DNA of 64,000 nucleotides, taken from Thalia democratica (Eukaryota). A model generated the notes under the pieces. That model was not told the origin of the DNA. It worked only from the letters and a program-made list of their open reading frames with translations, and did no database searches. Each line of letters opens with the position of its first letter. Position 1 is the first letter of the stretch. Location: assembly GCA_965202585.1 (NCBI GenBank), contig OZ241828.1, positions 61,566,001 through 61,630,000 on the forward strand. The letters run 5' to 3'. The position numbers and the translations under genes were made by a program. Positions 3,693-52,800 of the stretch are shown here, piece by piece.

Positions 3693-3905
3693 TGATCATG
3701 CCAATTTGATCATCAGACTATAAGCTTTCGGTAGACTGAGACTGCTTTTGTCTTAATTAGGACTCATCAGTCTACCGATAGCTTGTGGTATGATGATCGA
3801 ATTTGCATGATCAACCCTTTGTAAAACTTGACCTTGTCTCACGGCAAACGAAAGTCCAGATTTCTGCTCTGCAGAATTTCCGCGATGTTTTTGTTGATTT
3901 TATTT
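3693..3905. mobile_element. Rearranged hammerhead-ribozyme retroelement (retrozyme/Penelope pLTR-like): inverted HHR-containing half 3693-3772 (-) fused to a forward half 3767-3905 (+)
   Basis: The reverse complement of 3693-3772 matches 50850-50926, and 3767-3905 matches 50882-51015. The minus-strand core reads CTGATGA GTCC TAATTA AGAC AAAA GCA GTC. The GAAA box is mutated, so it is probably inactive. Confidence 0.8.
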
Positions 3906-21112: not shown

Positions 21113-26009
<4,897 letters not shown>

Positions 26010-26450
26010 TCATGTAAGTTTTCTTACGTCACAATAGTAATTAATATGTTTTCAAAAATTTTTATCATATTAGTTTAACTACTTGAAAACAAGTATATAC
26101 TTCTAGTTTAGAATTAAGTTTGGTAGGTTTTACATCAAATCTAAGAATTCTTATTTCATAGACACAGCAATGTCAGTTAATATCGATCGAGTTAATATAA
26201 AAAAAAAATGTTAATAAGCGAAATAGTAGATAAACTATAACTTTTCAACAACTTTTAATGAAAAGTTTGAGCCTAAATTACACTAAATATAAGTTTACGA
26301 TTAAACTTCTATTTATTGAATTTATTAAAAGTTAGTCTTTTTTTACAGATTAAAGAGAACAACGACAGCTAAATTCTTTCCATGACATTTATATTTAATA
26401 ATTTTTGTATTTACGTTTTTCTTTTTTTATCGTAACTTAAAAATAAATAA
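26010..26450 (+). other. Cathepsin L 3' UTR with a probable UTR intron (26014-26348) and polyadenylation signal
   Basis: GTAAGT lies 4 nt after the stop codon, a ttttttacag acceptor ends at 26348, and AATAAA is near 26443. Confidence 0.55.
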
Positions 26451-26784
26451 TGTTCCAATTTAGACTTTTAGTGACATTATGTTTTTTCGTATAAAATATA
26501 GAAATAAAAACTTAAAAGAAAACTTAATATTTGATAAGTTAAACTAGTTTTTCAAACTTTTTTTTTCCTAAAAGCACACTTTGCAGAAACTTTAGTAATG
26601 ATTGTCCGTTTACTAGTTAATTTCACATTTATTTTTACGTCAAAGTACTAACTATTGCCTTCGGATAAAAAATTTCGCCCGTTTTTTGAATTTTTGAGCT
26701 GAATTAATTTAGTGTTGTTACAACATGATTTAATATTTTCACTTTTATCTCCTAATATAATGTTTAAAACCTTTGTCGAATGAA

Positions 26785-29700
26785 TTATACCTACATTATA
26801 ATGACTAAAACAACATTTGTTTATTTTCAAATGCTGCTCTAGTCATTAAAATATAAGTCAACATAAATACAATATGTATTAGTATCACAAGTAGTTGCTT
26901 AAAATGGCTTTAATAGTTTTACTTTCCTGAATCTTGCAGAAATAAATTATCGTTTTTTTTTCTTTTAAAATGATGTTCTTACACTTTTTTATCTATATTA
27001 AGATAAACTTAATTATGATAAGATATGAGTGACAGAGTTTTATCAAAATATAAAGAAAAATCATGAAAGAACTTTAATAAAGAAAGAATAAATAAAGAAA
27101 ATATGAAGAACTCATAATAAACCCTTTATATAAGTTATAGTTTTTGTATTAACAAAATGAAAATAAAATTAATATTAGTTTATTAGTCATACTCGAACAC
27201 AGCTTAATGTCATTTACTTTCAGCTTTACAGTAAATTATAACAAAGTTCTGTTGAATACTTAATCACAAAATATAGTATAAAAACCAAAACTTTTGTAAG
27301 CGTTTACCTATATCATAACGACTAAAACAACATTTATTTAATTATCTAACAAATGCTGCTCTAGTCATTAAAATACAACTAAACTTAAATAAGTTTTTAT
27401 AATATAGGTTTAAAGTTTAAAATGTCATATTAGCTATACCGCAAAATTAATAAATAAATGTTTAGCAAAAATATGGTTTTCCAAACTCATTTCAATAATT
27501 GCCTAATTACAAATATTAGAAAAACTATTATATATTACCGAATTACCAGTTAATTACCAATTTACTTTATCACATTAGTTATCTCCCCAAAGATTGATAT
27601 CGCTCGCTATAGAAAACCCCGTTTTAAAATAAAGAACAAACCATAAGTTCGGAAAGCTAAGCTTCTTTATATTTGATTTTTTTTACTAACAATGTGTTGA
27701 TGACGTAGTTATCAAATACATGACATCATTCTTTGTCTGTTAAATTTATTCAAACAAAATCTAAAACCCTTTATACTTGTCGAACACGAAATAATAACTG
27801 TTGGACTCTAAAATTAATGCCTTAATAAAAAGTTGCAAAAAAATGTGTAATTGTATCTACCTGTATGTAGATTACTTAAACAACATTTGTATAAACATCT
27901 AACAAATGCTGCTCAAATCATTAAGTTACAAATTGTAAGCATCAAAACAAACTTATGAAATTTAGTTGAAAACTTATCTATGAACGAGCTTATATATGGA
28001 AAGTTTATCGTTACAAAATTTAACTAAAAATAAAGAAAACTTAAGCTAGAACGGGATTAAAACTTTTATTTATTATTTTTGCTAAAAAATTATATTAAAT
28101 AAGAAAAACAACAAGATTTTATAATGATTAATGAAAAAATATGCATTTACAGTTTATTTTTTTTTATTTAGAAAATTAGTTAAAGTATATTTTATTTTTG
28201 TTTCATATAAGGAACTTTTTCACCTTTTTAAGGTTAAAGAGAACAAAACTATTCTTAAAGCTGTAAGGTACGCTTTTTTGCTTGGTATCAAAGTGCGTAC
28301 CTCATCGGGTACTCTATCGTAGTTAAACTGTTGAATATGTATAACAAAAACAAAACGACTTTATTCTTTGTTTATTAAAATTACTCAAACAAAGCTTAAA
28401 GTCATTTACTTTCGGTTAAACACTATTTGTAAAAAACGTTTTTTGAAAACTCTTTACTCAATGTTCTAAGTTTAATGCCTGAAAAAAACAATAAAGTTTG
28501 TTCTATGTGTTTATCTGGATCATAATAACTAAAACAACATTTGCATAAATATCTAACAAATGTTGCTTAGTCATTAAAATACAAATAAACATGAATAAGC
28601 TTTGTTTCAAACATTTAACATGCGATCCAGATATATATATAACAAACTTAATTTACTATAAATTCAGAGAATTTATTGAGACAATTTTGACTTTTTACAA
28701 ATCGCAATAGATTGTATATTAACTGAAAAAATGGCTTTAAACTTTGATTAATACCTTTTTATAAACAATGGCTAAAGCCATTGTATTTTCAATTAAAAGT
28801 TTTAGTAGACTTATCATTCTTAAACCTTAATTGACTGTTAACAATAGTATGTCGAGCATGTTTTTCTATATCATAATGACTAAAACAACATTTGTATAAA
28901 TCTAACAAATGCTGCCCTAGTCCTTAAAATACAAACAAACTTAACTTAATAATAACAAATATTATTTTATTCAACTTTAAGTTTAATTTTAAGTTTCAAA
29001 CTGGACTTCCTTTTATTTTCGTTATTTACTCGTATTCCAACTTATACAACGACAGATTTGTGCATTAAAAAAATTTAATATTAAGTAAGTAATACTAGAA
29101 GAAGACTAGCTTCATTTAATATATGTTAGCAGTTAGTAGCGTATTAACTAAAAGAAAAGGACCTTAGAATTTGTTTCTTCCTATTATTAAACAAAGCCTA
29201 AAGTCATTTACTTTCAGATAAACAATAAACTGTAGTATACATTATTTATTTCATATTCAACTACAAAACAAAATACAAACACAATGTTTATGAATGTGTC
29301 TACCTATATTGTAATAACTAAAACAACATTTGTGTAAATATCTAACAAATGCTGCTCTAGTCATTAATATACAAGTAAACTTATAAGTTTTCTAATTAAT
29401 TGTTTGTATTCTTTTATAATTTAGACATTTTGTCATACTTTACCTAAATTCTAAGAAAAATACAGTAAAATAGTTATTCGTAACCACCAAGTTTCATGCC
29501 TGAATTTGTTTAACTTGTATCATAATGACTATAACAACATTTGCATAAATATCTAACAAATGCTGCTCTAGTCATTAAAATACAAATAAAAATAAATAAA
29601 CAACAATTTACATGTAGTCCAATGCAGCTGTAGACTGTGTATAAACTAAATAGAAATGACTTTAGTCACTGTTTACAATTTATCAAAACAAGTGCCATAA

Positions 29701-31224
29701 AGTCATTTATACTCGATTAAACAGTTTTTATTAAGCGGCAAATTTGAAACTTTACACGGAAGCGTATTTCAGATACGATGTAATTCAATTTTCTAAAAAT
29801 TATGATACGTATCAACTATTTTGATAAACTAAAATCCTGTAAAAGTAACAAATTTATTCAAATTTTATTAAATTACGCATCAAAACTTAGAAAACTAAAT
29901 AAAGAAATTAGCATGGCATAAATCTATTCCTATCAAAAAAAACTTAGCAACTTCAGATAATTAAAATAACAATAATGATAATCACGAAAAGCTTCACCTT
30001 TATCAATAACTCATTTATAAGTAAAACTTAACTTTTTAAGCAGTTAAAAATACTTCAATATCTAATTTTTTCCTATGTGTTTATCTATATAATAACGACT
30101 AAAACAAAATTTGTAAACATTTTAACAATGCTGCTCTAGTTATTAAAGTACAAGTAAACATAAATGAACAAGAATAATCTCTTTTTTTCATCTTTAAACT
30201 TAATTCTAAGTTTTTTCTTAATTTTACAACTTTTTTTTTTCAATTTTCTAACACACTAATGATTTTCCGATAAAAAATTGATGCACTTACAAGTTTTGGT
30301 ACAAAATAAAATAACTTTGGATATGTATTTGGGTATGTAAAATATTTTTACAAATATTTTGTGGATTGTGTATTAACTAAAAGCAAATGACTTTAACCTC
30401 TGTTTATTAATTTTATTTAAACAAAGCTTAGAGTCATTTACTTTTATTTAAACAGTAAATTCTGGTAGAAGGTCTTGCTTTCAATTTTAATCTAAAAATC
30501 AATTTAATTAAAATGTTTATTGAATGTGTTTACCTGTATCATAACGACTAAAACAACATTTGTATAAATAAACAACAAGTGCTGCTCTAGTCATTAAAAC
30601 ACAAGTAAACTGAAAAAACAAAGTTTGCACAGACTTGCTTAATTTTACGTAAACAAAACTTTTGTTACAGTTTTACAAATTCTTACCTGCATTTTAATGA
30701 CTTACAATATTTGGTCATAAAGTAAGACACTTTTGGAGTATATATTAGATTTATTTAAACAGTTTTTTGATCGTGTATTAACTAAAAGAAAATGACTTTA
30801 TTCTCTGTTTATTGATATATTAAAACAAAGCCTAAAGTCATTTACTTTTAGATAAACCGTAAACTGTATTACAAATAATTTTTTCCAATTATTCACATAA
30901 ATTTAAACTTTTAAGCTTTTCTTGAATTTGTTTAACTGTATCATAATAAATAAAACAGCATTTGCATAGATATCTAACAAATGCTGCTCGAGTCATTAAA
31001 ATACAAATAAACTGAATTGTAAAACATCATAAAATATCATTTTATAACTTCTTAATAGCATAATAAGACGCCACAAAAAAAGCTCACACGGAAACTAAAT
31101 ATTAAAGTATTTTAAATACTAAAAAGTAGTTATACGCTTATATTTACCGGTATTGTAATGGCTCTAACAATATTTGTACATTTATTTAACAAATATTGCT
31201 GGAGTCATTATGATACAAGCAAAC
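26785..31224 (-). ncRNA. Hairpin subfamily A, 11 copies; predicted 5p arm ~UUAAUGACUAGAGCAGCAUUUG
   Basis: Approximate copies: 26785-26862, 27302-27384, 27855-27935, 28509-28590, 28860-28940, 29298-29380, 29508-29590, 30079-30159, 30528-30610, 30930-31012, 31142-31224. The 27302 copy on the minus strand has 35 positions with 8 G.U pairs and only 2 mismatches. Confidence 0.8.
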
Positions 31225-34062
31225 TAAAATATACTTCCATTTAATATCAAAACTTCAATTTTTTTGGTATAATGTTGTTATTTCAAATAAATGTAAACAA
31301 ATTCATACGACTTCAAGAGCTTTAATTTTTAATATAAAAAATTTCAGTAAACTTTAAAAAAAAAATCTAATAGTGAAATGACTAAGAAAAATTCTAAAAA
31401 CAGCTTGCAGAAGTGACAGTATTTAAACTCAGTTGTTCAAGAAACTTTCCAAACGTATTAATTTTTGTGTTGCAATTAAAACGAAATGACTTTACTCACT
31501 GTTGTAAAGATTAATTCAACAGTGCCACAAAGTCATTTAATTTCAATTAAACATGAATGTAAATTGCTTTTATGAGCTTAATATTTCTAGCACACACAAT
31601 TTTCAGTTGGTTTTACTAACAGTTTGAAACAATTAAGTTGCTTCTTACTATTACTTTCAGTTAATAAGCTTCGCTCTTAAAATTTTCCAGATAAGTAACT
31701 TTTTGTGTTTTAACTGAAACGAAATGACTTTATTCACTGTTGATGATAATATTCCAACAGTGCCATAAAGTCATTTTATTTCAGTTAAACATGAGTGTAA
31801 ATTACTTTTAAAGGTTTATGTTTCCAGTTTGTTTTTTCAGTAGCTCGATTTATTTTTCATTTGTTTCCAGTACAAGGGCTTTCCTTAAAAAAATTCCAAG
31901 TTAAGTAATTTTTGTTTTTCAACTAAAATGGCTTTAAATACTGGTGAAAAAAAATCACTACAACAATGCCATAAAGTCATTTTATTTCAACCAAATATGA
32001 ATAAAAACTACTTTTATGAATAATATGTGTCCTGTTCATTTTATAAGTGCTTAAAAATATATTTTAAATTTCCGTTTATACATTTGTCCCCAAAACTAAG
32101 TTTTTTTTCTTAAAATTTTCCAAATAAGTAATTTTTGTGTATTAACTAAAACGAAATGACTTTATTCACTGTTGCTAATAATATTCCAACAGTGCCATAA
32201 AGTCATTTTATTTCAGTTAAACATGAGTGAAAATTACTTTGATGAGCTATATGATTCCTTTATTTTCAAGTAGTTTCATTTATTTCTTTCAAATACTTTA
32301 GTAATTAAACTTTCAAATGAAACTTTCCAAGTTAAATAATTTTTGTGTTACAATAAAAACGAAATGACTTTATTCACTGTTGTTGACAAGTTAACTCAAC
32401 AGTGCCACAAAGTCATTTTATTTCTATTAAACAGGATTAACAAGACATATTTAAATTTATACAATTCCTATATTCTAACACATTTAAAAATTTAAGTCAA
32501 AAGACCAAAAACTGATGGCGAAGTTAAAAATAAAGTTTACCTTAAGTATCATTTCATACCAGAAATTTTGACTTACCGAAGAAACTATTATACATACTTG
32601 AGTTTAAGTTACATATATTTACATCTAATAACATCGCTGTTTTGCCAAACGCATAATAAGTTTTAAAAGCTTTAATTTTTTATATTACTAAGCATTTGAT
32701 AATACTTTAAAATAATTAGTACTAATCTTGCTTACTTTTAAAACACCAAACCAACTGAAACTAGCTTTCAAAGCCTCAATACTAGCAGCCTGAAGGTAAT
32801 TTTGTTTTTAGCTTAAACTCGAACCAAAAAAAAACGCTATCTGTCTAAAACTGTTGTTGTGTGTTCTGAATTACTTAATTTTAATACTCGTGAAACTAAT
32901 ACCTTACAACTGATTATACTGTTTTTTTTAACTTATCAAATTCTACAAAATTCCTAGCAACATTACCTTTAAACTTTTAAATTCTTACATTATTACTACA
33001 TAACTACTTGTAAAGGTTCACTTTCTATTTAAAACCAGGTAGTAATGTTCAATTTTATAAGTTTTAAATAACAGTTGTGATTAGGAATAGATTAGAACTA
33101 TATAAAAATTAGCTTCACTTAAATTTGTTAAACAGCCAGTAATTACTGTTTAGCTAATAATTAAGATATAATAAAGCAGATTCACTACTTAAGCAAATTA
33201 TTTCTAATTTTACCACTACTTATAATCTAAAACACTGTATGTTACTTAGATAATAGTTATTATAAATTAGAAGTAATATCATAATGATGATAAAAATTAG
33301 TAAGTATTAGAAATGATTTAAAGTTCTCAACGTGAATAATCTGAAATTTTAAGTACATACATATAAAAATCATTAATTTTAAACAGCTAAAATTAGATAC
33401 GAGAAAAATCTAGAAAAAATGTAAAATTTTCCGTTAGATGGTGACGCGTCAAGTAAAAAGATTTAATTTTGATAAAAAAAGTAATTTATAACTGAATTTA
33501 TAAAGTTTTTTAGTTGATTAAACATTTAATTCTGTAATTTGAACACGAAAATTTTAATCAAAACATTAGCTGTTTAATAAACAACAACAACTTACATTTT
33601 GTACTTTTTCGATTGAAATAACTAAGCTTGAAGTACTCAATGGCTAGCTTTGACTTTATATTTACAAAACTTAGTTTGTATTTTTTTTTACTAACTACTA
33701 TATACGAAAATTCTTAACCTTTCTAGGCTATGATTAAACAACATTACGGCTTTTAATATTTGTAGCTGAGATTTACTTGCTTTTGTAAATGAAACTTTAA
33801 ACCTACTGCCCATTTAAAAATCATTTTCAAAATTGGTTTTACTGAATTTATACAACTAAAGTAGCGTACTTTTCAATAATTAACTAAGTCTTCAAACACT
33901 TACATATAAAAATACTGCAAAAGTATAAAAAATGCAACTAGTACTTTTACTACAAAATATTTCAAAGTAATTTTGGTGTACTAACTAAAGTCAAATGACT
34001 TTATTCACTGTTGTTAGTATTTATTTCAACAGTGCCACAAAGTCATTTAATTTTAATCAAAC
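27145..34062 (-). ncRNA. Hairpin subfamily B, ~14 copies; predicted 5p arm ~WAAAUGACUUUAUGGCACUGUU or UAAAUGACUUUAGGCUUUGUUU
   Basis: Approximate copies: 27145-27230 and 27710-27787 (both degenerate), 28343-28421, 28721-28796, 29146-29223, 29643-29722, 30375-30453, 30780-30857, 31474-31552, 31711-31790, 31921-31995, 32143-32222, 32352-32432, 33982-34062. The AAATGACTTTA...TAAAGTCATTT arms flank variable loops. Confidence 0.78.
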
Positions 34063-35350
34063 ATGGTTAAAAACTACTTTATGATCTAAATCTTTTTAGA
34101 TAATAGTACTTTAAAACTATGTCTGCTTGTTTTATTCTATTCAATTATTTCCAGATAAATGTTTTACACAAGAATTTTGCTTAGTTAAATGTCGGGCTTT
34201 TAAATTTATTTAAAAATTCAATGAATTGAAGTTTTAAAAACTTATAATATAAGAATTTGTTTTACATTTTGCGATAAATTCTTATGTTCCTACAAGGTTG
34301 AGCATCTACACAAAATCAAAAGCTTATAGCATAGTTTGACAAAAACTCTAACATTTCGTAACTTTTTACTCAACTCTTTTAAGAGTTATGCAAAAAAGCT
34401 TTATAAGATTAACCAACCACTGTAACTTTACTTAATTGAACTTAATATGTATACTTTTCACTTAAAATTGCAACATAGATAAAACATTTGAAAAGATAAA
34501 AATTTGAATAAATAGCAGTAGCAGCATTAGCTTTAAAAACGGCCTATTTTATCTAGAAATTCCAAATTAACCTGAGTTAGCTTTCATAGCCTGAATATAG
34601 TCGCTTAACTAACTAATATTAGCTTTACTGAACCTCGTACCAAAATAAAGCATTCATATTTGTCTAAAACTGCTGTCATTTATTTCCCTTACAGCTAAAC
34701 TACAGCTTTTGTATAACAATACCATAAAATATAACTTAATTACTAACTTTTATCAAACCCAACAAAATTTATAGCAACACTACCTTTCAAACTTTTAACG
34801 TTTCATTAGTATTAGCATTCTAACTACTTCTCAAGCTTTCACTTTTGGTATAAAATCCAGTTGGCAAGGAATTCTTTTATACACATTGATAACAGTTAAT
34901 AATTAGATACTTTATTACTGCAAAAATTAGCTTCACTTATAAGTTATAAGCTAACTTTGTTAAACAGACAATAATTAAGCCTTTAACAATAGTGATAGAG
35001 CACTTTAGCAAATTATTTCCAATTTCTTTGTTTAAATCAGTGAAAAGTAGGTAGATAATAAAGTAAGGATTAAAACTGATTAGTTATGAGGATGACAGAA
35101 ATTATCAAATAGTAAATAAAACAGATTAAAACTAATTAACAAAGATTATATAACATTATAAAGGTTTATAATCGAACACTAATTTGAAACAATGAAAGTG
35201 CAAAAAGATAGTAAACTAGAGAAAAATTTTGTAAAATTTTCCATTAATCAACAACGTGTCTGTAAAAGTTTTAGTTTTAATGAAGTAAATATTTTATGAT
35301 TACTGAAAACTTATGTAATGAAATCAACATTTAATTTTATAATTTCAAAG
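32750..35350 (+). repeat. Diverged direct duplication (~32750-33560 vs ~34570-35350) following the last two B hairpins
   Basis: Colinear shared blocks: tagctttca.agcct.aata; tgtctaaaactg.tgt; tagcaaca.tacctt; aaaaattagcttcactta...tttgttaaacag; tgtaaaattttcc.tta. Confidence 0.65.
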
Positions 35351-43816: not shown

Positions 43817-46800
43817 TTACATCCCGTCTTGCTGTAGCAGGTTGGCTGTTTCGTCCAAGCTTGCCGACATGTTTCCATCTGAAAAGAAAAAGTTCGGTCA
43901 GATTTGTACAAACGATCATTATTTAAAGGAGAAGTTTATTATAAGAAAAGAAAAGTTGATCAAGAGATGACACTTTTGAAATATCAGTTCATTGCATAAA
44001 AATTGCAAAACACAGCAGAAGTGTCACCTAATAATTTTTTTTAGAATTTTAAAATATACCCATTGATTTCTTACACGTCCTTTTATTCAAACAAAACAAC
44101 TTTACTTATGTTCAATTTTCAAAACAATAGAACATATAGGTCTCTTAGTCTTTATCTATTGGGGTAGAGAGACCAAAAAATAAAATGAAACAGTTCAACT
44201 TTTTTTTTGTTGCAGTTATAACTTATGCTCCTAAATGAAACACCATTTAAAGCTTTCCCTAAACATCGATACCCTAATAAATAAACAAAAAACTCCAATA
44301 AACTTCAAGAAGTTTTAGTAACAAAACAAACTTTCTTGCTGCTGTCTCGTGTTGAAATCCCTCGAATCACGTTCGAACACGGAATCGCTGTCGTGCATGA
44401 CGTCATTGACCACGTCACAATCGTAATCGTCATCCGTATCGTCTTGCTCGTCACTCGATGTCGCAACGGAGTAGGAGACGTCGCATGGAACGTTCAGGTC
44501 GATGTAGTCCTGAAAATATAAATATATCTTAATATATCAATTTATGAATGTAAAAATAAAGTAGCTTTTTTGGTAAGGCTGAATTAAATGCTAGTACTAA
44601 AGAAAACAAACAAAAGAAACAAAGTTTGATGAACATTTAAATAACCAACTTGCAAACGATTAACCTGAAAAGAATTGTTAATAATGCAGTGTAACAACTT
44701 TTGGTTACTTTTCGATTACAGAAAAAGTAATTATTAATGTAAATGTGAATAAATGAGTGTGATACACCATGCTTGATTATACCAAGTATTGGGCAAGTTA
44801 TAAAAAAAAACTATTACTATTTTATCATATTTACTTAAAACTTAAAATATCAAATAATTAATATCATGGCATAATAATTAACAGTTAGGCATGAGTTTCA
44901 TTTTAATGATTCCATAACTTTGTAAGAAACATTATTTTCTCTACTAAACAGTAAAAAATAAAAACAAACATGTGTATATACTTTTTTCTAAATGTACTAA
45001 AATTTAATGTTAAACAAGTTCACTAAGTTTAATGACCTTCATAACTACAGAACATAATCATATTTAAAACTGATTTATTATGGTATTATTAATTCAATTA
45101 ATCAAAATATAATACTCGTATGGCAGTTTATGTAGCAATTAATTAAATAAAAACAATAAATTCCACAAATATCCACACGTTTCTATGTCTTATCAATTTA
45201 AAACTTAAGTAAAAAATTATTATAAAACTTCATTAATTAACATTTACTGTTGTAAAAAATGTAAGATAAATAGGTTAAAATTGCTGAGCGCACGATAATT
45301 CAAATTCTAAAAAACTTAAAGGGCAACAACTTAAAAACTAATACACATTTTAAAAGGAAAAAAAAAGTATGTTGATCTTATTAATATCTACAAACCATTT
45401 TTTTCTTTTTGTAAAATATTATATTTATTTTTAGATATGGCTAAAATTAGTTTTAAAGTACACTTATTTTTAATAAATTTTAATATTTTAAAAAATATTT
45501 AAAATTTTACAAAAAATATATAACGATTTATAGATATTGATATGACATAAAAACGTAATTTAATTTTTATTTCAAATATATGTTACTTTCTGAGTCATAG
45601 TCTATTAAATATTTTTTTATGAATTTGAATTGTCATGTAATCAAAATTGCTATACAACTTCGAAAATTGTATGACAATTACTTTAAAAAACAAATACATA
45701 ACATACATACAAACATAAAATTATTTTCAAAATCTTATAGCTTCTATACTTTTGTAAACTTCCACAAGTCATACATTGGTGCAAATAAGTTTAACTGTTT
45801 TTTTAAACTAAAACTATAAATCTTAATGCAATAAAGAATATTTGGAACATTCGTTATACTTTATTATTGTTAAAAGGTCTTATTAGTTCATAAATACTAA
45901 ACAAAACCCATTAAAATAATATAAAACTTAAGTACTAATAAAAGCAGCTTTGTTTACTGTTATATTTTTCTCAGATTTAACAAGGTTCATCACAGTTTAT
46001 TTTAACCGTAACTGTAATTAAAAGGTTTATAAAAGTGGTAAGTTGCTTAAATTAGATTGATGGACAACATAAATTACTGTTGATAAAATATTGTTACATT
46101 TACTTGTAGCAATAAAACTTTATTAGGGTTTTTTTTAAATGTTTTAACAGTAATTTTATAATTTTAGAGACTGTATGATGAAATAAAATAGCTTTAAGAT
46201 AATGTAAATTGTTTTTAAGAACATGAGATTTTACATGATTTTTATAAGAGTGTTTCAGTTCAAAAATAAAAATAATTTCATTATGTTTAAATTGTTTATG
46301 TTTTACTAGGAGGTAAACACTATAAAAAAAATTTTTACTCTTGCATGTTTTTTGTAGAAAAATACAACTGAGAATACTATTTTACTATTTGTATATTTCT
46401 GAATATATAGATAAATTGATTTAGAGTAGTAAACACTTTTATAAAACATTTATTTTAAATCTAAAAAGACTAGTCAAATTAATAAATTAAATAAATAAAT
46501 CTGTGTGGCAATACATGAAGTAATTAATTAAACTGTTTTTTGATCACAATAGTAAAACTCCATGGATAATTACAACATTTAACCTTTATGTAAAAATTAA
46601 AATAAATTTTACCTTCACAGAACTTAATACATGATCATTAGTTTTATATAAGTAAAGTGTCTACTTAAATTTATGTTCGGATTGTAAAGACACTTTTATA
46701 AGATTTAAAACACGAATAAACTTTACAAGTTATTTTGAAACTTATATAAGTTTAAATTTCAACCAGATAAAAATTTTTTAATGTAATCATTGATTTTATC

Positions 46801-49800
46801 TCTTGCAGAACTTAGATTTTTATCACATTATCTTGTTATATAATAAACCTTCTATCTTACCCAAGAATTAAATTTTAACTGTTTTAACTCAATTCTTATG
46901 TAGTATATTGGTTGTATTTTACTTGATTTCAGAAAAATCCTAACCACTTAAGAACTCTTTTAGTTTTATAAACAACTAGTTTGGTTTTATATATTAAATA
47001 ACGAAGACCCGATTCGGTGAGTTTTTTTAATTACTTTCATGGAATTGAAACCTTTAAATGTTAAATAACTGAAATGCTTTTGACTAAACCTTTAAACTAT
47101 ATTTCCAAGGAATTGTATAAATGTTTTATAAGATTAAACACACGTTGTTCTATTGGCGTTTTTGTTTGCTTGGTAGTAAATTAAACAAATATTAAAAATA
47201 GTTAAACTATTTATTATAGTATCTTGAACTTGTAAATATTTATGCAGCTGTAACTTCTGTTTTTTTTAAATTTATTATATTAAATAAACTTCTAGAACAT
47301 TATTGAACACTTAACATTGAGTGATAGCCGAACTGTTAAATATTATACAGCTGTTCAAACGACTGTATTTACTTATGTCCAACAAGTGTTAGAAATTGTT
47401 AAATACTGGTTAACCAATAAACAAACTGACACATTATGCCAGGACTTACTTTAGTGAAATATTCTAAACTGTAACTTTTTATTATTCTTGCTTAAATTAC
47501 CTGAAATGAAGAACACCTTTACTAGTACTAAGCTTATATAACTCAACGGGTATACTACTATGTGTACAATATAGAAATATTTATAATTTTAAACTAACAC
47601 CTAAGCAGTGGCATTTAGGTTTTACACTTATAGTAGAATTTTAAGTTTTTTAAATTCCCTCACACCAGTAGTAGAGTGAGGCTTGTGTTATAAATTCTTG
47701 TGACAAATATTCATTGTTTTACTACTAACATCAGATGTAGTGGCGTTGAGCATCCTTTCCAAATCTTCCAAAAGATCCCTGAATTTGGGGCGATCTTGAG
47801 GGATGACCTCCCAACAATCTTTCATCAACCTGAAGAAAAAAATGTTAAGAAATATATAAGTGAGTTTTTGTATGCAATGGTTGAGCAAAACTTGCATAGT
47901 GTTTTCAAATATAACTTTGAAAAATATAAAATATATATATTCTTACGTGTCTATTGAAATTATCAAATCAAATTTAATTTTTTATACAAAAACAACATTT
48001 GTATTGATTTTCAGAGTTGAAAAGGAAACGAGTTGAAAAGGAAACAGAAACAATTAGTTTTGGAGATTAATTTTATTTATCAAATAAATAAATATATCAA
48101 CCTGTACAACAATGGACTGGCGAACTGTGGGTGCTCCAACCTCATACCTGATCTCAAAAGTTCCACCAAATTAACAGTTTTTATTCCCGGATAAGGGGAT
48201 CCACCCAATGTGAATACTTCCCACAACAGTACTCCGAACGACCAGCTGTTTGTATTATTAGATCGTTATTGCACACTTGGTATTTTTTCAATTTAAACTC
48301 TGTCATTTGTATTTAGGGTCTGTATATTAGTTTTTAAAAAAGAGTTTTAAAAAAGTTTTTAAAGAAAGCTGAGCTGGTGTTAGCTTTTTTTTAATATAAA
48401 AGTCTATTGATTTGTTAATAGATTTAGACTTTAATATTTCAATAAACTAACCAGTAGAATTCATAAAACTATTCGAAAATAAGTATATCAAATAAACAAC
48501 TAGTTTATTATTTTTCCAATATTTCTAACAACTAACACATCAGTGGCGTGTGTGAAAACATTTTCAACCATCGATTCAATTGCCATCCATTTGTAGGGAA
48601 GGTGACCCTGAAGGATATTGTAAAACAAATATTATTTTTATTATATATTATGAACTAATCTCATACACTATGAATTTTCAAATAAATAATACTTTAGTGT
48701 AAACTCAATATAATCTAATCGAAAGTATTTAAAAAGCTTTAGAAACTGATATTTTTTTTTGTTATTTAACCGCTATATTTACTATATTTATAAACATATT
48801 GTTTCCTAAAGCAAATATAAACCAACCCTGGAAACTTTTCTGTAATACTCGTGTGATCTGACATCCCTGGCAAGTCCGAAATCAGCAATTTTCATTTCGA
48901 AGTTGTTCGTTACTAATACGTTCCTTGCAGCTAAATCTCGGTGCACACACTAGAATAATACTTAATTATAAAGTATAAATTTTAATCTTCAAATTCCTAG
49001 TACTTATTATTTTTGTAAGTTACTGTAAAGCATACTAAAATCTAACAATGAAAACAAAATATACATGCTTAAGTTTAAGTGGATTTAAAAAAACGCTAAT
49101 GTTGTTATTTCTAAACCCGTTTTTATTATTTAATTACTGTTATAATATTTAAAGAAAACAGATTAAATTCGATTTTATTTTTATAACATCATAATATAAG
49201 AAGCTTAGGGAGCTGTGTAACTGCATTCTAATAACATTAGAGTTATAAAAACACAACAATTATTGGAAACGTTTTGTTTAAACTCACTAAAGCTTTAATA
49301 AAAACAAAATTAAAGTCACCAAGGGTCGCCTAACCATGCGAATTACTGTAAACTTAGCCAAGTTTTTATAGTAAAAAGATTATAGAAAAAGAAAACTTTG
49401 AAACACAACGGAGCAATTACGAAAATTTAATTCAAACAACAAAAAATAATCGGATTGGAAAATTTCCGATATTTTCACTCGAGTGCTTTTTATTATCCGC
49501 TTCCGACACTTGAGCTGTTATTACGTCATAATAACAAAATACGTCGCTTCCGAGTAATCAAACGCATACAAGTGATTACATTTGCCTGTTACGAGCGGAA
49601 ATTTCGGTCGGGAAATGTCGGGAAAGCATCCGTTGAATGGCTTTTTGTTTTAACTTTATATTTTTTGAATTTGTTAAAGTTTAAATTTAGATTTCAAACT
49701 ACTTAATTATAAGTATTAAACGAAATTGGTTAAACTCTTAACATTTAAACTTAAACATCGACTACACAAATTTTGTTTATTTAAAAGGCATTTTTAATAA

Positions 49801-52800
49801 TTTTATAGTATGTTTGTATGATTCTAGTAATACGAAATGCTTAAAAACAAAAAGCTTACATATACTGCATTATCAAAAAGCAAATATAATATTATTTTAC
49901 AAAATACGACAAAACATACATTAAACTTGTTTAAATCAAGAATTTTATGAACAAACCTTATTAATGGCGAGGAACTCCATACCCCTGGCCACCTGGTAAC
50001 TGGCGCTTATGAGGTCCTGATACGTGACGTTCCTGGGTTCGAATCCCGCCTCCGACTGATTTGTGGTGGGAATTTCTGGCAAGTCGATGTTGGATGGTCT
50101 GTTTCTGCGTAGAAAGTCCCTGAAAAATATTTGGTTGTTATGTTGATGATTTATATGATGTTACAAACAGAATTGCGCTAAAGTTTGTTATAAAATAATG
50201 TAATAAGTTCTCGTAGTAGAGATAATTGGTTGTTTTATACAGCATACTAAATTATTTTAAAAAAATATTTAAAAAAATTATTTAATGTAAGTAGTTTTAA
50301 TCTAATAGTTTACAAAAAAAGTGTGTGCTTAAAAACTAATTTTAAACAAAACTTACAATCTGAGCTAATGTAATTTAGTTACTTTGATCATCTTAATTAA
50401 ATCAAAGAGACTTTTAAAAACTTTAACATCTGCTATACTTAATTTTCTCAAAAAGCACTTGGAATTGAGTGGGCACTTAATAAAAAGTAAAGTATCGCGA
50501 CTATATATAGAAACTGATTCATATCGATTTATTTTTATCGACTTTTCGAAGCTGTTTTCTTTTTGTAAAGCGATTAAAAATAAAATATTCTTACGCAATT
50601 TCAAAGTTGTTTTTATTGATTTTATTGTTGGCAAACGAAAGTCCGGACTTGTTCTGCAGACTTTCGCCGATTTTGTTGATTGTACTAAAACGAGCGTACC
50701 AGATGTCTTGCCTAGTGGACAATGTTTTAAACGTTGCACGGCAAAGACAATGCTGACGTCACTAATCATTGCCAGCAAATGGTTGCTTCATGCGAAAGCA
50801 TGATAAACCGTTTGTAGATTGACGACTACAAGTTTTTCGGTTGTGACTGACTGATGAGTCCTAATAAGGACGAAACCGGTCTCAGTCTACCGAAACTTGT
50901 GGTCTGATGATCGAATTGGCATGATCAACCCTTTTGTTAAATTTGAGCTTGTCTCACGGCAAACGAAAGTCCGGACTTGTTCTGCAGACTTTCGCCGATT
51001 TTGTTTATTGATTTTAGTTTAGTTTTTACCACATATGCGCTTTCTATAAATGCTGTTTCTGTTATTGTTGTTGTTGTTGTTGTTGTTATAATACTAAGAT
51101 ATATTTTACTAGCCATCACCTACAACATTTAAACTTTAAAATTCAAATAACTTCAGTTAATACTCAGTATTTCAGTTTTTTAGTTGTATGTTTAGTTGTA
51201 CACTATTCCAGTATAATGCATATGATTGGCACACATTAATATACCATGTAGATTTTTTGTAGATGTACTGAAAAATATAACAAATCATTAAAATTTATAA
51301 CCTCAAACTACCCTGACTAGCGTACTCTGTTAGCAAGCATATAATAAAAATAATTGATAAACAAAATACAATATTCGCCTCAAATTGCCCAGACTGACAT
51401 ATTCAGCGATCAAATATAAAAATTAAACATAATTGATAATAAACAAACATATCCCACCTCAAATTTCCCTGACTGGCGTACTCAGTGATGAGGTACAAGG
51501 CGCCCTCCTGGGTCGACATGCCGATCAGGCTGATTATGTTTATGTGGGGCCCGATGCGCTTCAGTTGCTCCATCTCCGTCACCAGGTCGTTCACGTCCTT
51601 CTCACTGTTGTTATCTGCACAAGAAATTGTACTGATTTATTTATAACTATTTTATGAAGTTAAGAACAGTAGCATGTATAGTGGCTGTAAAGGGTTATAA
51701 AATAATTATTTTTTAAATTTATTATATTTGTAGAAAAAATTAACTTTATCTGTTGTTATCTGCAGAAGAAATTGTATTTAAGAAAAAAGTACTAATTGGT
51801 TTATTTATAACTGTTTTATCAAGACATAAACAGTAGTATATTAAGTGTAAAAGGGTTATGTTAGTGTTTTTAGGAACTTGGTATATTTGTAAAAAAATAA
51901 CTTTATGGTGGTTGTAGAATAGAATTCAAGTATGTATTTTTTTTCGATCAGTAATTAAGTTGAGTTACATGAGAATTTTTGTTGAAATAACAAGGATTAA
52001 TAGATATTATCTAATCTTTTAAAGTTTTTGCAAATAATTTGATCGTTTATCTCCACTTATTTTACAGATTTAATCCTTGGAAAAACAAACTAAAACGTGT
52101 GAATCTAAATTTAGAATGTTAATTATTTTTATTTTATTACATAAAATGCTAATATATCTGTATAAAATTTTATAACTACAATTTTTAACAGAACGGTCAA
52201 TTTAGTTTTATTAATATGTAAAAATAGAACTAACAATGGACAATAAAAACTGAATCCCAACATTTAAAATTTACATATAGGAAATAATAAATTATTTTAT
52301 GGAGGAAAACAAATAAAACTTAGACAGTTTCCTTTACAAGAACGGAAACGTGAATTTTCCACGGGAAGTATTAAAAAACCAATAAAAATTACACATCCCA
52401 TCTCAATTAAATCGAGCGACTTGAGAAAGTCACTGTATGAAGTATAAGTGGGTTTCATTTGTGACGACTTTTTATAATATTGTAGTTAAAACGAGTACTA
52501 AACCTTTAATGTTTAGATAATATTTTTACAAACTCACTTATCCAAACCATATTGTACTAAAATAATAATCTAATGTTGTTTCTAAACAGAAGTTAAAATA
52601 ATCTATATTATTTAAGTAAATACACTAATGCATTATAAAAATGAAAAGAAAATAAACTAGAATACTTGTAAAAACATGTAAATGTTAACATTAAAGTACA
52701 TCAATCAGTTTGGGTTTATTTTGATAATGATTAGTCAAAATACCTCATTACATATTTTAAAATAAAAAAAAACGTATTTATCATGAAACCAAATGTTTTG

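Follow-up and report, generated by a model that had tools for sequence, protein, structure and literature searches.

A hairpin cluster in the salp Thalia democratica

The DNA analyzed here, referred to below as the window, is a 64-kb stretch of the Thalia democratica genome (G000:C4:61566001-61630000 of an 802-Mb assembly) that is very AT rich, with a GC content of about 25%. Within the window, an intergenic segment of about 7.3 kb (positions 26783-34067) carries a cluster of related hairpins, all in one orientation on the minus strand, which we examine as candidate microRNA (miRNA) precursors. As a preliminary description of this DNA had proposed, the cluster lies between a cathepsin-L-type gene, with protease exons on the plus strand, and a fibroblast growth factor receptor (FGFR)-like gene, with tyrosine-kinase exons on the minus strand. 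The hairpins were located by motif scans, MAFFT alignments, and a covariance model. In all, 24 hairpin copies were found, namely, 11 of a family A, 12 of a family B, and 1 further degenerate copy. Twenty-one of the 24 are intact and fold as single long hairpins. The decayed copies are B01, B09, and the extra copy at 28715-28803, and two others (A03 and A08) are weakened. The earlier estimate of about 25 hairpins (about 11 A and about 14 B) is thus accurate for family A and too high for family B, which has 12 members; the total is 23 to 24, with 21 intact copies. The copies are listed below in minus-strand order, with minimum free energies (MFE) in kcal/mol for the minus strand unless the plus strand is named and with covariance model scores in bits.

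33979-34067, minus strand: B12 hairpin, first in this order; MFE -30.5, z -7.6; 73.7 bits
32349-32437, minus strand: B11 hairpin; MFE -29.5; 74.8 bits
32139-32227, minus strand: B10 hairpin; MFE -34.5, z -8.8; 84.4 bits
31913-32001, minus strand: B09, decayed, 3' arm deleted or mutated; MFE -13.8, z -0.5; 41 bits
31707-31795, minus strand: B08 hairpin, also folding well on the plus strand; MFE -36.9 (minus), -36.2 (plus)
31469-31557, minus strand: B07 hairpin; MFE -27.8; 80.6 bits
31140-31226, minus strand: A11 hairpin, the most divergent A; MFE -28.8 (minus), -30.7 (plus)
30928-31014, minus strand: A10 hairpin; MFE -32.5 (minus), -18.9 (plus)
30774-30862, minus strand: B06 hairpin, 65 nucleotides (nt) downstream of A10; MFE -30.5
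30526-30612, minus strand: A09 hairpin, top covariance model match at 92.5 bits; MFE -41.0 (minus), -18.5 (plus)
30370-30458, minus strand: B05 hairpin, 67 nt downstream of A09; MFE -29.6
30077-30163, minus strand: A08 hairpin, weakened, seed variant AAUAACU; MFE -18.0
29639-29727, minus strand: B04 hairpin; MFE -18.9; 71 bits
29507-29593, minus strand: A07 hairpin; MFE -33.3 (minus), -18.8 (plus)
29296-29382, minus strand: A06 hairpin; MFE -38.6, z -12.3 (minus), -12.7 (plus)
29140-29228, minus strand: B03 hairpin, 67 nt downstream of A06; MFE -22.8
28858-28944, minus strand: A05 hairpin, seed variant AAGGACU; MFE -32.1 (minus), -12.0 (plus)
28715-28803, minus strand: extra degenerate copy, an inverted repeat absent from the preliminary description; 35 bits, E value 2e-4
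28507-28593, minus strand: A04 hairpin; MFE -32.7 (minus), -19.6 (plus)
28338-28426, minus strand: B02 hairpin, 80 nt downstream of A04; MFE -25.2
27853-27939, minus strand: A03 hairpin, lower stem lost, seed variant AAUGAUU; MFE -24.1
27300-27386, minus strand: A02 hairpin, 35 bp with 8 G.U pairs; MFE -36.7 (minus), -7.5 (plus)
27146-27234, minus strand: B01, decayed; MFE -8.7, z +0.8; 39.6 bits
26783-26869, minus strand: A01 hairpin, last in this order; MFE -36.2 (minus), -15.3 (plus)

Families A and B align as homologues, which indicates descent from one hairpin, and they share one geometry. The lower stem has 11 to 14 positions, with 11 to 12 bp, and in the consensus starts with GUUUA and ends with UAAAC or ACAC. 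A conserved mismatch, or a small internal loop, sets it off from the upper stem, whose length is exactly 22 nt and which carries a loop of 9 to 15 nt. Substrates of the Microprocessor and Dicer have about 11 bp between the basal junction and the Drosha cut, followed by about 22 bp up to the apical junction, and the shape of the cluster hairpins fits such a substrate. Each hairpin forms 28 to 35 pairs in 21 copies, where at least 16 arm pairs are expected of a miRNA precursor. Set against MirGeneDB-type annotation rules, the hairpins have a stem of about 35 bp, a loop of at least 8 nt, and arms that are more conserved than the loop and flanks (as judged among paralogues), and they are not repeat derived. 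As described earlier, the stems start with GUUUA. By an approximate tally, most copies have a UGU, a Microprocessor motif defined in vertebrates, where the 5' arm reaches the apical junction.

The order of the copies suggests how the cluster grew. An A hairpin is followed by a B hairpin 65 to 80 nt downstream on the minus strand five times (A02-B01, A04-B02, A06-B03, A09-B05, and A10-B06), and A05 together with the degenerate copy may form a sixth pair. Within the pairs, the length of the spacer has been kept and its sequence has not. B07 to B12, in the 5' part of the cluster, belong to a B subtype and follow one another every 120 to 150 nt, apart from a 1.5-kb gap before B12. Judging from this arrangement, an A-B module and single units were probably duplicated repeatedly, after which everything outside the hairpins diverged over a long time. 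Tandem Repeats Finder reported no tandem array across the window, because the hairpins alone are alike and the spacers are not.

Strand bias, conservation, and uniqueness

Pieces of 90 to 100 nt taken from the window have a median MFE of about -10 kcal/mol, compared with -25 to -41 kcal/mol (z scores down to -12) for the cluster hairpins, and the 7.3 kb of the cluster contain about half of the window's strongest minus-strand hairpins. When both strands of the 23 family A and family B units were folded, the mean MFE was -28.9 kcal/mol on the minus strand (z of -6.7 against dinucleotide shuffles) versus -18.2 kcal/mol on the plus strand, the minus-strand value being lower by 10.7 kcal/mol on average (Wilcoxon P = 4e-5). 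In the consensus stems, which were scored on the consensus structure and not on MFE folds, 567 cells are Watson-Crick pairs, 77 are G.U, and 11 are A.C; G.U pairs occur in 26 stem columns and A.C pairs in 11. A DNA palindrome that decays by transitions would yield G.U and A.C in a 1:1 ratio on either strand, and the excess of G.U therefore indicates selection for pairing in an RNA of the minus strand. The strand-asymmetric pairing described earlier is thus borne out, as is the example chosen for it (27302-27384, in A02), in which the 35-bp minus-strand stem with its 8 G.U pairs contains 2 mismatched positions and the energies are those given above for the two strands.

The base composition of the spacers is skewed as well. 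On the minus strand, spacer DNA contains 677 G and 545 C (plus-strand GC skew of -0.108; P = 2e-4), a skew that exceeds that of the neighboring genes, including the body of the kinase gene, and the hairpin-free gap at 32438-33978 (1.5 kb) has a value of -0.14. This surplus of G over C is compatible with transcription of the minus strand and may be taken as a weak, indirect sign of it. The strongest hairpins outside the cluster, at about 3709-3800 (-46 kcal/mol) and at 50815-50910 (-37 kcal/mol), fold on both strands; their open reading frame (ORF) fragments are peptide-like and common to both.

Conservation was assessed among the paralogues of this one genome. Pairwise identity is 77% within family A and 72% within family B, with values of up to 96%, and the 87-nt flanks and spacers are 53% identical, compared with 52% for random pieces of the window. 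The number of minority bases per column is 1.1 to 2.1 in the arms and 2.5 to 5.1 in the loops and flanks. The 22-nt 5' arm is the same in B07, B11, and B12, while their loops are unrelated. Thus, the earlier statement that the arms are conserved and that loops and spacers vary freely holds: the arms are the least variable part, and the spacers are at random identity. Covariation, which had been named as a further check, was likewise found. In family A, 92.9% of the cells are paired, compared with 36 to 51% after sliding of the partner; 5 pairs have changed on both sides. In family B, 94.3% of the cells are paired, and 8 pairs have changed on both sides, with 25 such cells, a result matched by 0 of 500 shuffles. 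Unless purifying selection is assumed, the contrast among arms, loops, and spacers has no easy explanation. If whole units underwent gene conversion, the spacers would be homogenized too, and this process does not account for conserved arms beside random spacers.

The family appears at one locus of the genome. In a BLAST search of the 802-Mb assembly with one A unit and one B unit (E values up to 10), all matches fell within C4:61592795-61600072, i.e., at this locus only. A search of the assembly for the hairpin pattern returned the cluster and three outside matches (C1, C7, and C8), which is about the control rate; these three were rejected, since none matches the covariance model. The covariance model itself found no further copy in the window or in the 10 kb on each side, and genome-wide uniqueness rests on the BLAST and pattern searches. 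Dispersed copies, which would have pointed to a family of miniature inverted-repeat transposable elements (MITEs), were found nowhere outside the locus in 802 Mb.

Comparison with databases and the literature gave no named relative. No match was obtained in Rfam 15 at gathering thresholds. At E values up to 10, 21 weak subthreshold matches were returned, 20 of them to miRNA precursor models and 17 on the minus strand, the best scoring 38 bits against a cutoff of 111. AAUGAC is absent from the list of mature Ciona savignyi miRNAs (PMC5831862), and a full-text literature search with the candidate guide sequences retrieved no known miRNA. The A arm bears a likeness to miR-7, and the B2 arm bears one to miR-183 (UAUGGCACUG); this lead was dropped, because the seeds or registers do not fit and the Rfam mir-7 and mir-183 models gave no score. 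Eight metagenomic contigs that exactly matched the 20-nt family A 5' arm were also rejected as chance matches: the 20 to 26 matching nucleotides lie inside a coding-like frame (..ERMTRAAFEN..) of AT-rich marine microbes and form no hairpin. These matches call for caution in short-word searches.

Candidate miRNA products and competing explanations

We consider it probable that the stretch is a polycistronic miRNA gene cluster specific to this salp lineage, because of the strand bias, the conserved arms, the compensatory changes, the stem geometry, a heptamer common to both families, and the absence of dispersed copies. Every test open to sequence alone supports the reading of the hairpins as miRNA precursors. 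A minus-strand miRNA cluster had been proposed in the preliminary description; the strand-asymmetric pairing and the conserved arms with freely varying loops and spacers on which that proposal drew have held, and the hairpin number has not.

The heptamer AATGACT is nearly invariant in the 21 intact copies and, in A and B alike, takes up positions 2 to 8 of the 22-nt upper stem, so that this stem opens with (U/A)AAUGACU. AAUGACU is thus a candidate seed common to A and B. If Drosha cuts at the conserved mismatch, the most likely 5' product would be UAAUGACUAGAGCAGCAUUUGU for family A and AAAUGACUUUAUGGCACUGUUG or AAAUGACUUUAGGCUUUGUUU, starting with AAAUGACUUU, for family B; if the cut falls one base upstream, as a UG at position -14 predicts, the seeds of the two families would differ by one base. 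In the first 8 positions of the upper stem, we counted 3 changes on the 5' arm versus 14 on the part of the 3' arm that pairs with it, and many of those 14 are transitions that leave G.U pairs. From this pattern, the 5' arm is favored, with moderate confidence, as the guide. Three A copies carry seed changes (A03, A05, and A08), and two of them (A03 and A08) are the weakened hairpins. AGTCATT sites, which would match the seed, are absent from the 3' untranslated region of the neighboring cathepsin gene and, outside the cluster, occur at or below chance in the window.

The following mechanism would fit a miRNA cluster. A single RNA polymerase II transcript of the minus strand, reaching from above 34.07 kb to below 26.78 kb, would carry the 21 intact and 3 decayed hairpins, descendants of a single ancestral hairpin that split into A and B, with an A hairpin and the B hairpin about 65 nt after it as the duplicated module. 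Cleavage by Drosha/DGCR8 at the conserved mismatch would be followed by Dicer cleavage at the loop. The 5' arms would then act as guides, such that about 18 hairpins would deliver the AAUGACU seed at a high dose and repress mRNAs with AGUCAUU sites. A role in the clearance of germline or early-embryo transcripts, as suggested at the outset, is speculation. Further still goes a scenario that we regard as quite unlikely, in which the cluster is expressed as one abundant AAUGACU family of about 18 hairpins, thaliaceans built several such high-dose arrays independently, and these arrays serve as bulk transcript-clearing switches while sexual and asexual generations alternate very fast, which would make them a functional analogue of miR-430 with a separate origin in a tunicate.

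Several observations weigh against a miRNA cluster, or against parts of this mechanism. (i) A search of sequencing runs with the whole cluster matched no RNA run; it matched two runs of unrecorded kind that are apparently DNA and probably derive from the assembly's own sample. With the cathepsin exons as the query, six marine transcriptome or metatranscriptome RNA runs were matched, and four of these six (two metatranscriptomic and two oligo-dT) gave no real contig on the cluster when compared with positions 26400-32390, only spurious pieces of 20 to 40 nt; this is a weak point, as these four runs are contigs with low coverage of the salp and are uninformative about expression of the cluster. 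(ii) Some B hairpins fold equally well on the plus strand. (iii) Conservation is equal on the two arms when the upper stem is taken as a whole, which tempers the choice of the 5' arm as the guide. (iv) Because the paralogues share ancestry, their cells are not independent events, and the number of such events is lower than the cell counts suggest. (v) The basal UG of vertebrate precursors, expected at about position -14, is consistent in family B only, being present in about 10 of 12 B copies and about 5 of 11 A copies, and a conserved CNNC, another motif defined in vertebrates and expected 16 to 18 nt after the 3' cut, was not seen in the A and B alignments; both tallies are approximate readings of the alignments. 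(vi) The metagenome scan yielded no orthologue, only the chance coding matches described above.

Three other explanations have to be weighed. The first accepts a miRNA cluster and places its main products on both strands or on the 3' arms, with A and B having different seeds and targets. The equal conservation of the arms over the whole upper stem speaks for it, as does the folding of B08 and A11, which is as good on the plus strand, and there is a precedent for antisense products at 44 of 380 Ciona miRNA loci (PMC2884542). However, the plus strand of family A gives poor folds (-9 to -20 kcal/mol), the heptamer common to A and B stands in the seed position on the 5' arm only, and the seed region of that arm has changed less than its complement (3 versus 14), and we therefore judge this explanation unlikely. 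The second holds that the minus-strand RNA stem-loops are functional without being Drosha/Dicer precursors, for example, as protein-binding hairpins of a long noncoding RNA or as another class of small RNA. Strand bias, covariation, and conservation indeed establish only a selected RNA structure and not which enzyme reads the hairpins, and the missing CNNC and partial basal UG would suit such stem-loops. The geometry of 11 plus 22 bp, the mismatch at the predicted Drosha site, and the loops of 9 to 15 nt are nevertheless what is expected specifically of miRNAs, the heptamer common to the two families lies exactly at the seed position of a 22-nt upper stem, the arm sequences and not the pairing alone are conserved, and the weak Rfam matches are to miRNA models in 20 of 21 cases, all of which makes this explanation very unlikely. 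The third, a neutral DNA-level feature (a palindromic tandem array, a foldback or MITE relic, or cruciform DNA kept similar by gene conversion), is scarcely tenable and largely refuted: it would suit tandem copies in one orientation, three of them decayed and two weakened, in a very AT-rich genome that favors hairpins generally, and it is contradicted by the lack of copies elsewhere in 802 Mb, by conserved arms beside random spacers and freely varying loops, by an excess of G.U over A.C (77 to 11) on one strand only, and by the negative Tandem Repeats Finder result.

Known systems and neighboring genes

The closest known system is a lineage-specific cluster of Ciona intestinalis in which 25 miRNAs are linked within about 4 kb (Ci-mir-2200/2201/2203, later the mir-4000 series) (Hendrix et al. 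2010, PMC2884542); its architecture and mode of origin are alike. Both cases concern a tunicate with about two dozen paralogous hairpins in a few kilobases that arose by tandem duplication, and in both, there are few related families, the seeds (candidate seeds in the salp) are identical or one base apart, and the family appears to be absent from the nearest species compared. The two are not related in sequence, since the guides of C. savignyi miR-4000, miR-4001, and miR-4018 begin with UGAAACUU, CGGAACUU, and CGGAACAU, respectively. The spacing in the salp is looser (45 to 470 nt, plus one 1.5-kb gap), and the Ciona clusters are backed by small-RNA reads, whereas the salp cluster is known from its sequence.

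In zebrafish miR-430 and primate C19MC, as would be the case here, many tandem hairpins deliver one seed at a high dose from one locus. The salp cluster has fewer hairpins than these arrays, with greater divergence among its copies. The miR-430 seed is AAGUGCU, in contrast to the candidate seed AAUGACU of the salp. MITEs and foldback transposons resemble the cluster hairpins in being short, multicopy inverted repeats that fold into hairpins; in contrast to the latter, which are strand biased and confined to one locus, they are scattered through a genome, with copies numbering from tens to thousands, and are strand symmetric.

A let-7 search of the same assembly provides a comparison within the species. 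Its matches are below threshold (at most 41.8 bits, compared with 53.5 bits in Rfam), yet the let-7 seed on the 5' arm and the fold are intact:

C1:15559858-15562934, offsets 928, 1078, and 1507, minus strand: three let-7-seed hairpins within about 600 nt
C1 near 82.84 and 83.60 Mb: let-7-seed hairpin from the same search, two identical copies 0.76 Mb apart

These intact, clustered let-7 hairpins indicate that the salp has ordinary miRNA genes and clusters them. They fold at -35 to -37 kcal/mol in the sense direction versus -27 to -31 kcal/mol in the antisense direction, with about 4 G.U pairs each, values that bracket those of the cluster hairpins. The two sets are alike in stem length, energy range, G.U pairs, and clustering. 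The let-7 hairpins differ in that their seed is conserved across animals, they are richer in GC, and their strand bias is weaker, whereas the cluster family remains below all Rfam thresholds.

We regard the hairpins as a probable new miRNA family whose kind of arrangement is already known. Salps are ecologically important tunicates whose miRNA repertoire has barely been described. Two surveys of Salpa thompsoni report unnamed novel miRNAs, some of them enriched in embryos. The small RNAs of this species peak at 22 nt, and three of four of its novel miRNAs are more abundant in embryos (PMC5174732). If the interpretation as a miRNA cluster is true, the cluster, having 21 hairpins and a single candidate seed, would rank with the largest miRNA clusters known in tunicates. 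It would also add to Ciona a second, independent example of miRNAs that multiplied explosively at one place in this fast-evolving group. The hairpins supply concrete queries for existing small-RNA libraries, with reads predicted to start with UAAUGACU or AAAUGACU, as well as a defined seed for target prediction. More generally, the asymmetry of G.U over A.C among paralogues offers a way to spot RNA genes when only the sequence is at hand.

The genes on either side of the cluster are as follows.

21113-26517, plus strand: cathepsin-L-type gene, with Peptidase_C1 (papain-family) exons at 21.1 to 26.0 kb, convergent with the cluster
44318-51636, minus strand: FGFR-like receptor kinase gene, 3' part, with PK_Tyr_Ser-Thr exons at 48.1 to 51.6 kb
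about 47.8 kb, minus strand: translated exon of the kinase gene (DCW..RPKF)
44318-44536, minus strand: last exon of the kinase gene, with a QDYIDL tail

The kinase gene lies 10 kb upstream of the cluster and shares its strand with the hairpins; its QDYIDL tail is typical of FGFR C termini. The cathepsin-L-type mRNA has two alternative 3' ends in RNA contigs from a marine metatranscriptome, with poly(A) after positions 26462 and 26517, and thus stops about 270 nt from A01, the last hairpin, converging on the cluster. Beside a cathepsin exon, at 21682-22111, there are overlapping ORF pieces with near-repeated peptides.

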